A program made the position numbers and the translations under genes. Positions 12,879-22,900 of a DNA stretch of 64,000 nucleotides are shown here, one piece after another (positions within the stretch are counted from its first letter, which is position 1; each line of letters opens with the position of its first letter). Location of the stretch: the NCBI GenBank assembly GCA_965240325.2, contig OZ251237.1, forward strand, positions 744,001 through 808,000, read 5' to 3'. Under the pieces are notes generated by a model. That model saw nothing but the letters and a program-made list of their open reading frames with translations, did no database searches and was not told where the DNA came from. This stretch comes from Rebecca billardiae RCC1528. Lineage: Eukaryota > Protista > Haptophyta.

Positions 12879-14283
12879 CTACTTGCGCGCGGTGTCGTAA
12901 TTTTCGACGAACCAGTCGACTGTCCTCTTCACGGCCTCGGGGAAGGGCGTGAAGCGGAAGCTCGGGTTGAGCTGCTTGAGCCTGGCGTTGCTCGCGGTCT
13001 TCTTGTACTGCCCGTCCGCCTTGCTCGTGTCGAAGCGCACCTCGCCCGTGAATCCCATCGCGCTCGCGACCGTCATCGCTGCGGTCTTGATGTCCACCTC
13101 ATCCTCCTCGCCCACGGAGAGAATGATCGGCTCGACCGAGTCGTAGTCGCGCAGCGTCCAGACGAAGAGGCGCGCGAGGTCCTCGGAGAAGATGAACTGG
13201 CGCAGCGGCTTGCCCGTGCCCCAGATCGTGTATGGCTCGCCGCGCTGTTTGGCCAGGTACAGCTTGTGCATCAGCCCAGGTAGCACGTGGCCTGCACACA
13301 GCGACGGGGCGCGACGGCGCGGCAGCGCGCGGCGCGCGCGAGGCGGGGCGGCGCGTCTCGGCGGCGGCGCGGGCCGGGGATCGGCGTGGCGCGGGCAGCC
13401 GTCGCGCGGCCGCGCACCGTCCTCGATGCTGAAGTTGTCGTGCGGGCCGAAGACGTTCGTCGGGATCACCGACGTGAACTTGCACCCGTACTGCTCCGCG
13501 TAGCACCGGTTCTGTACGTCAATCATCCGCTTGGCGTAAGCATACCCCTCGTTAGAGGAGTGCGGCGGGCCGTCGTGGATCATGGTCTCGTCGATCGGGT
13601 ACGAGGTCTTGTCCGGGAACACGCACGTGGAGAGGCATGACACCACCTTGCGTACCTGCTCGGGGCGCGCCGCGCGCGCACGCCGATGAGCTGCCGAGAT
13701 CGGTCTCTTCGGTTGGGCCCACCGGTCCAACCGAGCGCGCTCGCACGTGCGCGCGGTGCGGGCGCGCGCGCGCGCTAAGGCGAACCTTGTACTCCTTGCT
13801 CAGGCTGAGTACGTTGTCGTTCATGGCGACGTTGTCGCGCCAGAACTCCACCTTGTACTTCATGTTCTTGAACAACCCGCCCACCATCGCCGCGAGGTGG
13901 ATGACGTGCGTCGGGCGATGCTTCTCAAAAATGGCCTTCACCTGCCGCGCGTCTCTGCGGCCAGATCGCGCGAGATCGCGATGGCGCGCGGTGAGGCGGG
14001 CACGCGACGCCGCGGGTAAGCCTGTACGCGCCGCGCCGAGGGCTGCTCGCACGCGTCACCAGCGCACGCACGCCGCCCACCTGAGGTCACCATCCTTGGA
14101 CGAGAGGAAGACCCACGTCTCGCCGTTGGCCGCAGCCGACCCGTCCTCCCGCACGACCTTCTCGATCGCCTTGCCCACGAGGCCCGTGCCGCCAGTGACC
14201 AGCACGACGGCGCCACGCCCGTTGCTCTCCGCTGAGTCGAGCGTGCTGCCGTACACGCTGCGCAGCTCCTCCGGCGCCAACAT
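12879..14283 (-). CDS. GFUS: GDP-L-fucose synthase (GDP-4-keto-6-deoxymannose epimerase/reductase); exons 14283-14081, 13954-13786, 13655-13418, 13291-12879
   Basis: Motifs [71 protein letters not shown] and [10 protein letters not shown]. Three GT-AG introns restore a continuous frame. Confidence 0.95.
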
Positions 14284-14440
14284 CGCCGCCCACCTGGCCT
14301 CCGCCTCTTGCTCTGCCTACGATGGCGGCGCCAATGCGCGATTGCGCGCGCGATCAACGGCCCTCGACGGCGCCACCTTCAGCCTGGCCAAGCTGAAGGT
14401 GAGCTAACGCCGCCCCGATCGCACGCAAGGCAACGCCGAA
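14284..14440. promoter_or_regulatory. Putative bidirectional promoter shared by GFUS and GMD
   Basis: Only 157 bp separate the two divergent ATGs; CCAAT occurs near 14331. Function is inferred from geometry. Confidence 0.6.
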
Positions 14441-20000: not shown

Positions 20001-22900
20001 ACGAGCGTGCTGCTGCTCCCTGCGCCCGGCGCTAGCAGCTCGTCTGCCGGCACGATGATCGAGATTGCAATCTCCTTCGCGCGCATCAGCCGCGCGAGCA
20101 CGGCGCTGATGCCGCCGACGCGCGCGCTGGGCGCGACGTGCGCGTCGGCCGCCGCGTCCGTCTCGGCGTGCGCCCGGTGCTCGCTGCCCGCCTCCTCCCG
20201 CCGCGCGCCGCCGTTGCCACTCCGCACAAGCAGCGCGTGAGCCGACGAGCCCGGCGACTCGGCCGAGGTGTGTACGCGCCAATTGTGCGGCAGGTACCAC
20301 AGGCCGAGGGTGTGCAGGTGCAGCGCCTTCGCGCCGCCCATCTTCGGCGTGAGGCAGTGCGCGACGAGCGCGCGCCCGTTCACCAGCCCTTCGCGCGTGC
20401 ACTGCCGCACGATCACCACCGGCGGCAGAATCGCGACCTGCAGCGAGGGCGAGGTTGCCCCCGCCGCCGCGGCCCCGGCACCGGCCGCGCTGCTCGAGCC
20501 GACGCGCACGCGCGCAGCAGCGGCCCCGCCGACTGCGCCCAGGGTGAGGGCGTGGGCGTCGGCCAGGGCGCTGCTCGGGAGCCCCGCGCTGCGAAGGAAC
20601 GCGGCCAGCCTCCCATCGGTGCGGTTGAGCCCATCGCCGTGGGCGCTCGCCGTCACGAGCACGACCGTCGCCGGCGGCGAGCGCGGCGCGCTCGGCAGCA
20701 CGTCCGGACGCGCCGCAACCGATCGGACGTGTGCGGCGAGCTCGGTGTTGAACGCGACCTGGTCGTCGCCGATCTCCTCGGAGAGGGCCTGCACGCCCGA
20801 GGCGAAGGCGAGCATGGGCGGCGTCGAGCGCAGCAGCACGAAGCCCATCACCGCCGTGCTGCCGCCGAGCGCGCGCCGCGCCGCTTCCGGGAAAGTTCCG
20901 GCCGACGCGACGGCGTCAGCTGGCCGCGAGCTGAGCCCGGCGGTGGCCCCGACCGCGAGGCGGCTGACGCGCGGGAGCACGTCGTCGAGCCAGACGGCGT
21001 CGGAGTCGCACATCAGCACGTCGAGGCCCGCGCGCAGCAGGAGCAGCGCGAGAGCACCGCGCTCGATCCACACCTGATGCGCAGCGGCGCGCGCGCGGGC
21101 GGCGCGCGCGAGCGTGTCAAGAGTGCGTGTCGCGAGCGCGCGCGGGCGAGCCATGGTCGAGATCGTGGTCGAGATCGGTCCCAGACGATTGCGCCTCGCT
21201 CGGCAGGAGGCGGGCGGCGCACGCTCGCTCCGCCCTCGCCCCGCGCACGCGCGCGCCGTGCGCACACCCCGTCGAAGCGGATGTCCCCCTCGTCCGGCCG
21301 CATCGCTCTACTTGCCGTGTACCTCGGGATCAGAGGGAACACCGCCGCGCCCAGCGTGCGCAGCTCGTCGTGCGAGTGCCAGTCGAGCGCGCCCACGACC
21401 GGCATCATCTCGACGCCTGCGTGCACACGCACGCTGCGCGAGGGGAGCGCGGCGCGCCGCGCGACGCACAATGTGATGAGCCGCTCACATCAGCGCGGGC
21501 AGGCAGGCATCGGGCGCGCGCCGCGCACACCTGAGGAGGAAGTTGAGCGTCACATCGACATACGGCTCGCTTGTCGTCGTAAAGACCACCGTGCGACCGT
21601 TCGGGCTCGCGCGCGCGCCCGCGCGCGCGAGCTCGAGCGCGAGCGCGTCCCGATCCGCGCACGGCGCGCCCGACTGATCGGCAGGCGGCGCGTGGCCCAG
21701 CCGGTTGGCAATGTGCCCAACGACGGCCCACACGCGGCAGGCGAGCGCGGGCGGCCAGGCGTGGCGGTGGTGCGGGCCGCCAGTGCCGTGCTCCGCCGTG
21801 GGCGGGCTGCCACGCGCGTCCGCCCGGTGCAGCCTCGGGTCAGCCGGCGCGCTGCACGCCAGCCGTGCGCGCCTCTGCAGCGCTGCTGCGTGCTCCGGTT
21901 CGCCCAGGCGGCGCGAGCTCGCGGCTGCAGGGCCGGCGGGCGGCGCGAGCCAGCGGAGCGCCCTGGTGAGCTCAGTCACGCAGCCCGCCGGCGTGACGAG
22001 CCGCTCGAAGCTCGCGGTGAACGTCGCGTTCGCCCCGTCTGGCTCCGCGGCGGCGCGCTTGGCGAAGCGGCGGTGCGAAGCCCACGTCGCCAGGTAAGCC
22101 TGCGCCAGGCTCAGGGCCGACTCTGCTAGGTGAGCCGAGAGCGCGCGACTGAGCTCGGTGCCGCCGAGCGAGTCGACGTGGCCGCCGCTGTCGCCCGCGT
22201 AGTACAGCCGCTGCGTCTCCGCGTAGATCGCGTCGAGCGGGTGTCGGTCCAGGAAGAGCGCGCGCGTCGGCCGCCACCGGTGGCATCGGCTGAAGAAATA
22301 TTTGAGCGCAGATTTGGGCAGGTGGCGCGCGGCCGGGTTGCGCGCCTCGGCGCCGTGCCACGGGAGGTGCCCGCGGCGCACCGCCGGCGCTCCGTGCTGC
22401 GCGTCCGCCCGCTGCTGCCAGAAGCGCACCGCCTCGACCGGCGTGTGCATCGCGTGCGCCTTCACCACGAGCGTGCTCGTGTCGCACCGCCGCTCGCCCA
22501 CAAAGACGGCGCGCAGCGAAGTGTCGTCATAGGCAGAGCCCGTGGCGATGCCGGTGGCGCGCTCGAGCAGCTGGCGGAAGTACGAGTTGCCGCTGCCCGG
22601 GAAGGAGTACAGGACGGGCGGGGCCCACGCGCACGCGCCATGCGGGAGGAACGCCGCGTGGCCGTCGGACGCAGGCTGCAGCGAGCATCCCTCCGCCGCC
22701 GCCGTCAAGGCCCGCCGCCGCCCGGCCGCCCGCTCGGGCCCGGGCCAGCCCTGGCCGAGGGGCGCGGCACCGGGCGTGGCGTTCGCCGCGAGCTCTAGCG
22801 CGTGGATCGATCGCTCGTTGCGCGCGTCGACGGCGGCCCCCGCCCTCAGGCAGCCGAGCAGCACCAGTGCGATCGGCCCAGCTCGCCTCAACGGGCGCAT
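17081..22900 (-). CDS. Multidomain secretory-pathway glycan-modifying protein: signal peptide - sulfotransferase - nucleotide-diphospho-sugar transferase (GT77-like) - GT-A-like - fucosyltransferase-like; exons 22900-21531, 21433-21268, 21073-17081 (~1842 aa)
   Basis: Two GT-AG introns (21434-21530, 21074-21267) join three ORFs in frame. The joined frame rebuilds a Nucleotid_trans-like motif series (FTTTSEPYVDVTLNFLLS...VGALD...VWIER...GLDVLMCDSDAVWL...DDQVAFN). The N-terminus carries YSFPGSGNSYFRQLLERATG, VKAH and RHPLDAI (WSCD-type sulfotransferase). The C-terminus carries VVVWQADSECEAEYDDLF, IGVHV and ELWLLS..SAFG (FucT/NodZ-like). Confidence 0.75.

Follow-up and report, generated by a model that had tools for sequence, protein, structure and literature searches.

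The window analysed here, a stretch of 64,000 nucleotides from contig OZ251237.1 of the haptophyte Rebecca billardiae RCC1528, carries both genes for the de novo synthesis of GDP-L-fucose, GMD and GFUS, next to a gene for a large multidomain protein. GC content is ~70% across the entire 64 kb and generates many spurious long open reading frames (ORFs), so gene models were made by hand (Table 1). GFUS and GMD, whose GC content is the same as that of their flanks, are divergent and have their start codons exactly 157 bp apart; the large gene converges on GMD, with 1,036 bp between the GMD stop at 16044 and its own stop codon (17081-17083). A preliminary description of this DNA had reported the adjacent, divergent pair with a 157-bp spacing and a third, convergent gene about 1 kb away, and these coordinates prove correct, for the pair to the base. 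Contigs assembled from short reads (runs ERR14847148 and ERR14847151) reproduce window positions 9831-16476, which hold a WD40 gene, an EF-hand gene, GFUS and GMD, at 100% and 99.985% identity, and one ERR14847148 contig reproduces positions 16711-23167, with the large gene, at 100% identity. The sole gap in read support coincides with a tandem duplication of ~230 bp, within the two copies of which the short-read contigs L118 and L001 end. The best named matches of the window proteins come from Prymnesium, Haptolina, Calcidiscus and Diacronema, and the haptophyte affinity is upheld.

Table 1. Positions of the features discussed, in window coordinates; the features further away from the gene pair stand last.
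Feature	Position	Strand	Basis or remark
GFUS (GDP-L-fucose synthase)	12879-14283	-	Pfam Epimerase; PDB match to human GFUS; GT-AG introns; intact spliced ORF
GFUS/GMD inter-ATG spacer	14284-14440		157 bp; putative bidirectional promoter and 5' untranslated regions
GMD (GDP-mannose 4,6-dehydratase)	14441-16044	+	Pfam GDP_Man_Dehyd 6e-131; spliced model against P0004; PDB GMD matches
3' intergenic region between GMD and large gene	16045-17080		lower GC; flanking genes convergent
Two-copy tandem duplication, ~230 bp	about 16378-16748		in the GMD/large-gene 3' intergenic region; includes a 58-nt block 100% identical between copies
Large gene (multidomain enzyme)	17081-22900	-	splice model scored against three full-length homologues
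Signal-peptide-like N-terminus of large protein	22829-22900	-	MRPLRRAGPIALVLLGCLRAGAAV; by inspection
Sulfotransferase-like P-loop domain	21593-22684	-	motifs FPGSGNS, VVKAHA, PWHG, DRHPLDAIYAE; alignments A1 and A4; fold matches
GT77 (Nucleotid_trans) domain	20279-21592	-	Pfam PF03407; DSD motif intact; interrupted by both introns
Conserved middle domain	18896-20083	-	alignment A3 of four homologues
C-terminal fucosyltransferase-fold (GT23/GT37/GT65/68) domain	17264-18322	-	AF2 model, Foldseek, family profile; motifs degenerate
SULT-type sulfotransferase ORF	4463-5854	+	Pfam Sulfotransfer_1 6.5e-27; PDB SULT1C2 about 1e-16
UTP-glucose-1-phosphate uridylyltransferase (UDP-glucose pyrophosphorylase)	56398-58338	+	Pfam UDPGP 3e-116

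The GFUS gene is composed of four exons (14283-14081, 13954-13786, 13655-13418 and 13291-12879), which are separated by three GT-AG introns of 126, 130 and 126 nt and join into an uninterrupted frame for 340 aa. Three of its ORF pieces match Pfam Epimerase, the spliced protein contains the YxxxK motif (as YAYAK) and CLSTC, and its best 18 matches in the PDB are all GDP-L-fucose synthases, which places it within this specific family. It lies far nearer to the human enzyme (4e5y, E=1.6e-102; Naegleria 6aqy, 7e-86) than to that of E. coli (1.6e-28), and is of the eukaryotic type. GMD likewise has four exons (14441-14596, 14746-15171, 15337-15499 and 15635-16044) and three GT-AG introns, here of 149, 165 and 135 nt, and its product of 384 aa matches the Pfam family GDP_Man_Dehyd under accession PF16363, matches solved GMD structures at about 1e-64 (5e-65), and contains the SDR catalytic motifs TSELYG and YAVAK. 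Over its full length, across all junctions, the spliced product shares 90% identity with P0004, an uninterrupted GMD of 383 aa encoded on a 1,484-nt JGI contig; with 72-78% identity to everything compared, GMD is too conserved for taxonomic placement. The enzymatic identities proposed for the two genes in the preliminary description are thus upheld, as is its view that the introns mark them as established nuclear genes. As an aside, two proteins from environmental data (P0003, 741 aa, from JGI, and P0005, 553 aa) each contain two copies of GMD in tandem with a short linker between them, an arrangement of which we know no earlier description.

With ~14,446 genes per genome, the number given for Diacronema lutheri (PMC8379373), GMD would be the immediate neighbour of GFUS by chance with a probability of ~1.4e-4 per genome. 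The 157-bp spacer very probably provides a bidirectional promoter that is shared by the pair. The 13-mer AGGCAACGCCGAA lies within the spacer directly before the GMD start codon (14428-14440), and a second copy is found at 23436-23448, ~540 bp upstream of the large-gene ATG and antisense to that gene. As evidence for co-regulation this element was rejected, being borderline in frequency (~1% of shuffles) and wrongly oriented.

How well is the large gene defined? The model that scores best against three full-length homologues starts at an ATG at 22900, has the exons 22900-21529, 21416-21268 (with an alternative acceptor at 21433) and 21073-17081, and yields a product of ~1,837 aa; both short introns fall inside the GT77 domain. 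The protein begins with a hydrophobic stretch, as do its homologues, no further hydrophobic segment of 19 residues is present in it, and it is predicted to enter the secretory pathway. In word-indexed searches, Ala/Arg-rich words of low complexity dominated for both queries, a 1,394-aa ORF and the N-terminal domain, and nothing or only the query itself was returned. When 1.84 billion representatives were searched in full by HMMER, the C-terminal 999 aa retrieved just 17 relatives in addition to the protein of the window itself, and no relatives of the middle domain. Four proteins among the HMMER matches and the members of their 90% clusters can be aligned with the window protein over the full length: P0123 (1,652 aa), P0124 (1,386 aa), P0127 (1,528 aa) and P0143 (1,496 aa). 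P0123 and P0143 (KFE25_002549) are two paralogues from D. lutheri, to whose assembly the accession prefix JAGTXO belongs (PMC8379373). P0124 clusters with a longer form of itself, P0142, which is an ORF on an MMETSP transcript, which implies that a relative has the fusion on one mRNA. With occurrences in D. lutheri, in one MMETSP transcriptome and in a few environmental or Logan assemblies, the large protein belongs to a real yet rare multidomain family.

The domains of this protein can be assigned with unequal confidence. Most secure is the fold of the C-terminal domain. Its AlphaFold2 (AF2) model, built on an alignment of nine sequences, has a mean predicted local distance difference test (pLDDT) of 71, and Foldseek aligns it with FUT8 (1.2e-7), NodZ (1.4e-7), AtFUT1 (3.3e-7) and also POFUT1/2 at a probability of 1.00; all 50 matches listed (E<=5e-5) are fucosyltransferases, and 72 matches reach E<=1e-3. 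A family profile (A2) moreover matches NodZ (5.6e-6) and AtFUT1 (0.003) by sequence, so that together the structural and profile matches make the predicted fucosyltransferase fold a solid assignment. The homologues P0123, P0124, P0122 and P0126 carry the motifs GGLGNRLR, GVHVR, ACDD and SSFSD, and the family consensus (GGLGNR, HVR and SxFS(G)xxA) aligns with NodZ and AtFUT1. The GT77 domain matches Pfam PF03407 (E=1.3e-7, 32.2 bits against a cutoff of 22) and is 51% identical to that of P0127; its DxD-type motif is intact (CDSDAVW) and conserved with P0127 and P0143. The middle domain finds no match in Pfam or the PDB; a resemblance to GT-A enzymes was seen by eye only and is not claimed.

The N-terminal domain can be called sulfotransferase-like with moderate confidence. 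Among the best 32 Foldseek matches of its model in the PDB, 26 are sulfotransferases (TPST1/2, 3-OST, cytosolic SULTs, Teg and the curacin ST), among which chains from a small set of enzymes recur many times, with P-loop kinases lower down the list. The best match is to TPST (E=0.039, probability 0.89), and none falls below E 0.03. Two motifs, FPGSGN(S/T) and DRxPxDAI, resemble the 5'-phosphosulfate-binding (5'-PSB) and 3'-phosphate-binding (3'-PB) motifs for 3'-phosphoadenosine 5'-phosphosulfate (PAPS) but do not have the usual lysine. The domain matches none of the Pfam sulfotransferase families Sulfotransfer_1 to _5 and nothing in the PDB by sequence or profile, and hhalign gives it a probability of 1.2% against the window's own Sulfotransfer_1 gene. 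The domain calls of the preliminary description thus hold for GT77, by Pfam, and for the fucosyltransferase-like part, by Foldseek and profile; the sulfotransferase call is carried by weak if consistent fold matches together with motifs, and a PAPS-dependent sulfotransferase is not borne out by any family model or by sequence matches to solved structures. Pattern scans of prokaryotic genomes and viral contigs revealed no relatives of this domain. The FPGSGNT motif may also resemble the WSCD1/2 sialate sulfotransferases, a likeness which we treat as a lead only.

The D. lutheri paralogues have the same four-part architecture as the window protein, with which they share 30-50% identity, and P0143 is annotated as 'Nucleotide-diphospho-sugar transferase domain-containing protein'. 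In the type a paralogue (P0123, on L004) the GT77 DxD motif is lost (AEPDALW) and the canonical sulfotransferase-like and fucosyltransferase motifs are retained; in type b (P0143, on L090), the GT77 motif CDSDAVW is retained and the VVKAH motif, the HVR arginine and the SSFSD motif are lost. Such reciprocal decay of motifs looks like subfunctionalisation after duplication. Unlike either paralogue, the window protein retains both the sulfotransferase-like and the GT77 motifs. A Y_phosphatase2 gene is located directly upstream of the type b gene in D. lutheri (L090, 8770-9501) as well as on a Logan contig from SRR29340331 (L006, 2852-3583), and the two loci are syntenic with each other and not with the window.

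A partial counterpart of the window's neighbourhood is found on a 22-kb contig (L121) whose GMD protein has an identical counterpart in EukProt, from Phaeocystis antarctica. Located 380 bp downstream of this GMD (7219-8457) is an ORF of 657 aa (8838-10811), which contains a GT77 domain (Pfam 8.9e-13) and whose C-terminal half matches the sulfotransferase-like profile A1 with an hhalign probability of 96.6% (E=4.9e-10). As in the window, the direct neighbour of GMD thus combines GT77 with a domain of the sulfotransferase-like family; the Phaeocystis protein differs in its shorter length, in the reversed order of its domains and in lying in tandem with GMD rather than convergently, and it has neither the fucosyltransferase-fold domain nor the middle domain. 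By these comparisons GMD adjoins a gene for GT77 and the rare sulfotransferase-like domain in two distantly related haptophyte lineages. If a genome of 14,000 genes contained up to ~20 genes of this kind, finding two cases of adjacency in the few genomes examined would have a likelihood far below 1e-3 by chance. Since GMD keeps such a neighbour in Phaeocystis too, its link to this class of enzyme is probably functional.

The three genes form a real neighbourhood in the nuclear genome. On balance, we favour the view that GMD and GFUS are a gene pair for GDP-fucose under common regulation, with a fucose-related enzyme of glycan assembly as their neighbour. We envision a scenario whereby the spacer, acting as a bidirectional promoter, would drive the co-expression of GMD and GFUS, whose products would convert GDP-mannose via GDP-4-keto-6-deoxymannose into GDP-L-fucose in the cytosol. 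GDP-fucose would then be transported into the Golgi, the site at which the large protein might act on a fucose-containing glycan: the C-terminal domain, if still active, might add fucose, the GT77 domain xylose, galactose, arabinose or a similar sugar, perhaps onto fucose in the manner of RGXT, and the N-terminal domain sulfate from PAPS. Conceivably, the GT77 enzymes RGXT1/2, which transfer xylose onto L-fucose (PMC2793385), provide a mechanistic reason for a link between GT77 and GMD. The large enzyme would thus plausibly be a consumer or decorator of fucosylated glycans, and its product is more likely to be a sulfated, fucose-bearing heteroglycan or a glycan on glycoproteins than a fucan or fucoidan. 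We infer the membership of the large gene in the GDP-fucose pathway from only two observations, the fold of its C-terminal domain and the recurrence in Phaeocystis.

A number of observations weigh against this view, and many of them concern linkage. The preliminary description had itself looked to conserved linkage in relatives as a test of its cluster, and linkage is mostly not conserved, with the Phaeocystis GMD and its GT77/sulfotransferase-like neighbour as a partial exception. No GFUS is found within 10 kb of GMD in Prymnesium parvum, in Chrysophaeum taylorii or at two further eukaryotic loci (L003 and L008), nor within 10 kb of D. lutheri GMD (KFE25_010622), the downstream side of which is lost at a contig end and the upstream neighbour of which is a 3,070-aa gene on the same strand. 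GFUS is also missing near the GMD of the Phaeocystis contig, and GMD adjoins GFUS at 0 of 80 GFUS loci from the metagenome collection, a few of which are giant-virus contigs. In D. lutheri, the two paralogues of the large gene are located in mid-contig, again with no GMD or GFUS within 10 kb, which sets them apart from the window copy. No wider synteny with the window is seen at any locus examined, and the three-gene layout is lineage-specific rather than an ancient cluster. Further objections come from the genes themselves. The large gene runs towards GMD and is served by a separate promoter, and the sulfotransferase call depends on a low-confidence model (pLDDT 59) that has no individually significant match. 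In the window's C-terminal domain the motifs are degenerate, with LGDVASRVR in place of GGLGNRLR, GVHVGTNR in place of GVHVR, TCDPG in place of ACDD and PSAFGE in place of SSFSD, and the HxR arginine, which is essential in FUT8, POFUT1 and AtFUT1, is shifted by three residues into a low-confidence loop. The exopolysaccharides of two Pavlovophyceae, Pavlova sp. and Diacronema ennorea, are rich in galactose and rhamnose, with arabinose as well, and not in fucose (PMC10498797). Lastly, the weight given to the Phaeocystis recurrence is only approximate, the size of the gene family having been assumed rather than counted.

The D. lutheri GMD gene (L120, 10001-12171) is annotated as partial, with the contig (JAGTXO010000029.1) ending inside it. 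It shares an N-terminal extension with the window GMD and is richer in introns, five exon blocks covering its first 228 residues.

Alternatively, only GMD and GFUS may be coupled, through a shared promoter, and serve general fucosylation, and the large gene may be a coincidental neighbour whose fucosyltransferase-fold domain is a pseudo-enzyme and whose GT77 domain builds a sulfated glycan based on galactose, arabinose or xylose. This would account readily for the convergent orientation of the large gene, its 1-kb distance and separate promoter, for the want of linkage in D. lutheri, and for the degenerate motifs, given that the D. lutheri type b protein is also without the HVR arginine and SSFSD. 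It would equally fit the galactose, rhamnose and arabinose of the Pavlova sp. and D. ennorea exopolysaccharides (PMC10498797) and the presence of arabinosyl- and galactosyltransferases in the GT77 family (PMC5371791, PMC8724618). However, an enzyme of the same class next to GMD in Phaeocystis would be hard to put down to chance twice, and the window copy retains RxR and SxFG from the C-terminal motifs. We therefore regard coincidence as a serious contender, albeit a rather unlikely one.

The preliminary description went further and proposed an operon-like cluster dedicated to a sulfated fucan, in which the supply of GDP-fucose is combined with the polymerisation and sulfation of a fucoidan-like polymer or a scale or exopolysaccharide. 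The adjacency on which it was built is confirmed, a span of 10 kb nominally holds all the activities that it needs, GMD has a GT77 and sulfotransferase-like gene beside it in Phaeocystis too, and brown algae offer an analogue in their FK-GFPP and sulfotransferase cluster (PMC11468063). The linkage is nevertheless not conserved in D. lutheri, and 'fucoidan-like' claims too much, because the fucosyltransferase-like module is both the least conserved and the most degenerate part of the association, being absent altogether from the Phaeocystis neighbour, because the Pavlova sp. and D. ennorea exopolysaccharides are rich in galactose and rhamnose rather than fucose (PMC10498797), and because nothing indicates a processive fucan synthase. 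A dedicated fucan cluster as such seems improbable to us. The fold family of the C-terminal domain, in addition, also holds transferases for sugars other than fucose, namely the GT106 rhamnosyltransferases.

A recent origin of the GMD-GFUS pair by transfer from bacteria or giant viruses, in which the two genes often lie side by side, is largely refuted and very improbable, as is contamination or misassembly, for although bacterial gmd-fcl operons are well known and adjacent GMD-GFUS pairs occur on 10 of 26 viral contigs, once head-to-head with 86 bp between the genes (L096), the window genes have three GT-AG spliceosomal introns each and the GC content of their flanks, GFUS is far nearer to the human than to the E. 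coli enzyme and only 63% identical to its nearest viral counterpart, which has no adjacent GMD, the N-terminal extension of GMD is common to D. lutheri, and independent read assemblies show the same layout.

In a wider sense, and much more tentatively than for the reading of the window that we favour, haptophytes may repeatedly keep or re-create a link between GDP-fucose genes and an undescribed family of secretory-pathway enzymes, in which a novel sulfotransferase-like domain is fused to GT77 and, in the Pavlovophyceae type, to a fucosyltransferase-fold domain as well. The window would then represent the most complete version of this link and would mark machinery for the fucose-containing sulfated glycans of haptophytes.

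The remaining genes of the window encode unrelated housekeeping proteins (WD40, EF-hand, mitochondrial carrier, ankyrin, band 7, PHD and methyltransferase). An ORF for a SULT-type sulfotransferase, with the motifs PKSGTTW and RDPTD and a putative N-terminal hydrophobic membrane anchor, is located ~7 kb from GFUS, with the WD40 and EF-hand genes in between, and is a possible peripheral member of the neighbourhood. Another nucleotide-sugar enzyme, the uridylyltransferase, is encoded ~33 kb from the large gene and 40 kb from GMD, and is probably unrelated to the GDP-fucose neighbourhood. The WD40 ORF (8553-12458, minus strand) holds a run of ~34 glycines, and its 5' part overlaps an antisense ORF of 99 aa for an EF-hand protein (11919-12218, plus strand) with a signal-peptide-like hydrophobic N-terminus; given this overlap, WD40 probably begins further downstream than the ORF does.

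In the ocean, the fucose-containing sulfated polysaccharides of microalgae form a persistent sink for carbon. Apart from the candidate lists for brown algae, no glycosyltransferase or sulfotransferase has, to our knowledge, been assigned to their synthesis. The physical linkage of GDP-fucose genes to a multidomain enzyme in two haptophyte classes thus offers concrete candidates for expression, assay and knock-out. If our reading holds, the window would join the small number of metabolic gene neighbourhoods from the nuclear genomes of protists, and would illustrate how two genes of a pathway can share a bidirectional promoter. Were the link coincidental, the annotation of a rare multidomain enzyme family, with reciprocal domain decay in its D. 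lutheri paralogues, would still stand.

How does this neighbourhood relate to known systems? In the bacterial gmd-fcl (wcaG) operons of O-antigen and colanic-acid loci, both enzymes are encoded by adjacent, co-regulated genes, usually beside those for fucosyltransferases. Such operons are intronless and transcribed polycistronically from one strand, whereas the window genes are divergent, in all likelihood separately transcribed, and have three introns each, so that none of these bacterial features (same strand, polycistronic message, no introns) recurs in the window pair. Among viruses, PBCV-1 encodes both GMD and GFUS, and metagenome-assembled genomes (MAGs) of giant viruses contain the two genes side by side as in the window; those in GVMAG-S-1063923-83 (L096, 4365-6399) stand head-to-head, and the other viral pairs are convergent or in tandem. 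The pairs in giant-virus MAGs differ from the window genes in being AT-rich, intronless and distant (47-63% identity for GFUS and 47-62% for GMD), and hence do not point to a recent transfer, and no homologue of the large gene is found nearby. At the level of the protein, the GT23, GT37, GT65 and GT68 enzymes (FUT8, NodZ, AtFUT1 and POFUT1/2) share the predicted fold of the C-terminal domain, with Foldseek E-values of 1e-7 to 1e-5, and the window copy departs from them in its Gly-rich loop and in where its HVR arginine lies.

The closest precedent is the neighbourhood conserved in brown algae, which comprises FK-GFPP and a sulfotransferase (and a hydrolase) (PMC6418280, PMC11468063). Like the window, it is a nuclear, eukaryotic pairing of GDP-fucose supply with a carbohydrate sulfotransferase, and it has been proposed to serve fucose-containing sulfated polysaccharides. 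The brown-algal cluster is conserved across orders and supplies GDP-fucose by the salvage pathway, through a fucokinase/pyrophosphorylase fusion, whereas the window layout is lineage-specific and relies on the de novo enzymes GMD and GFUS. The brown-algal sulfotransferase, moreover, belongs to a conventional family and stands free of glycosyltransferases, whereas the sulfotransferase-like domain of the window is predicted to be fused to them in a single protein.

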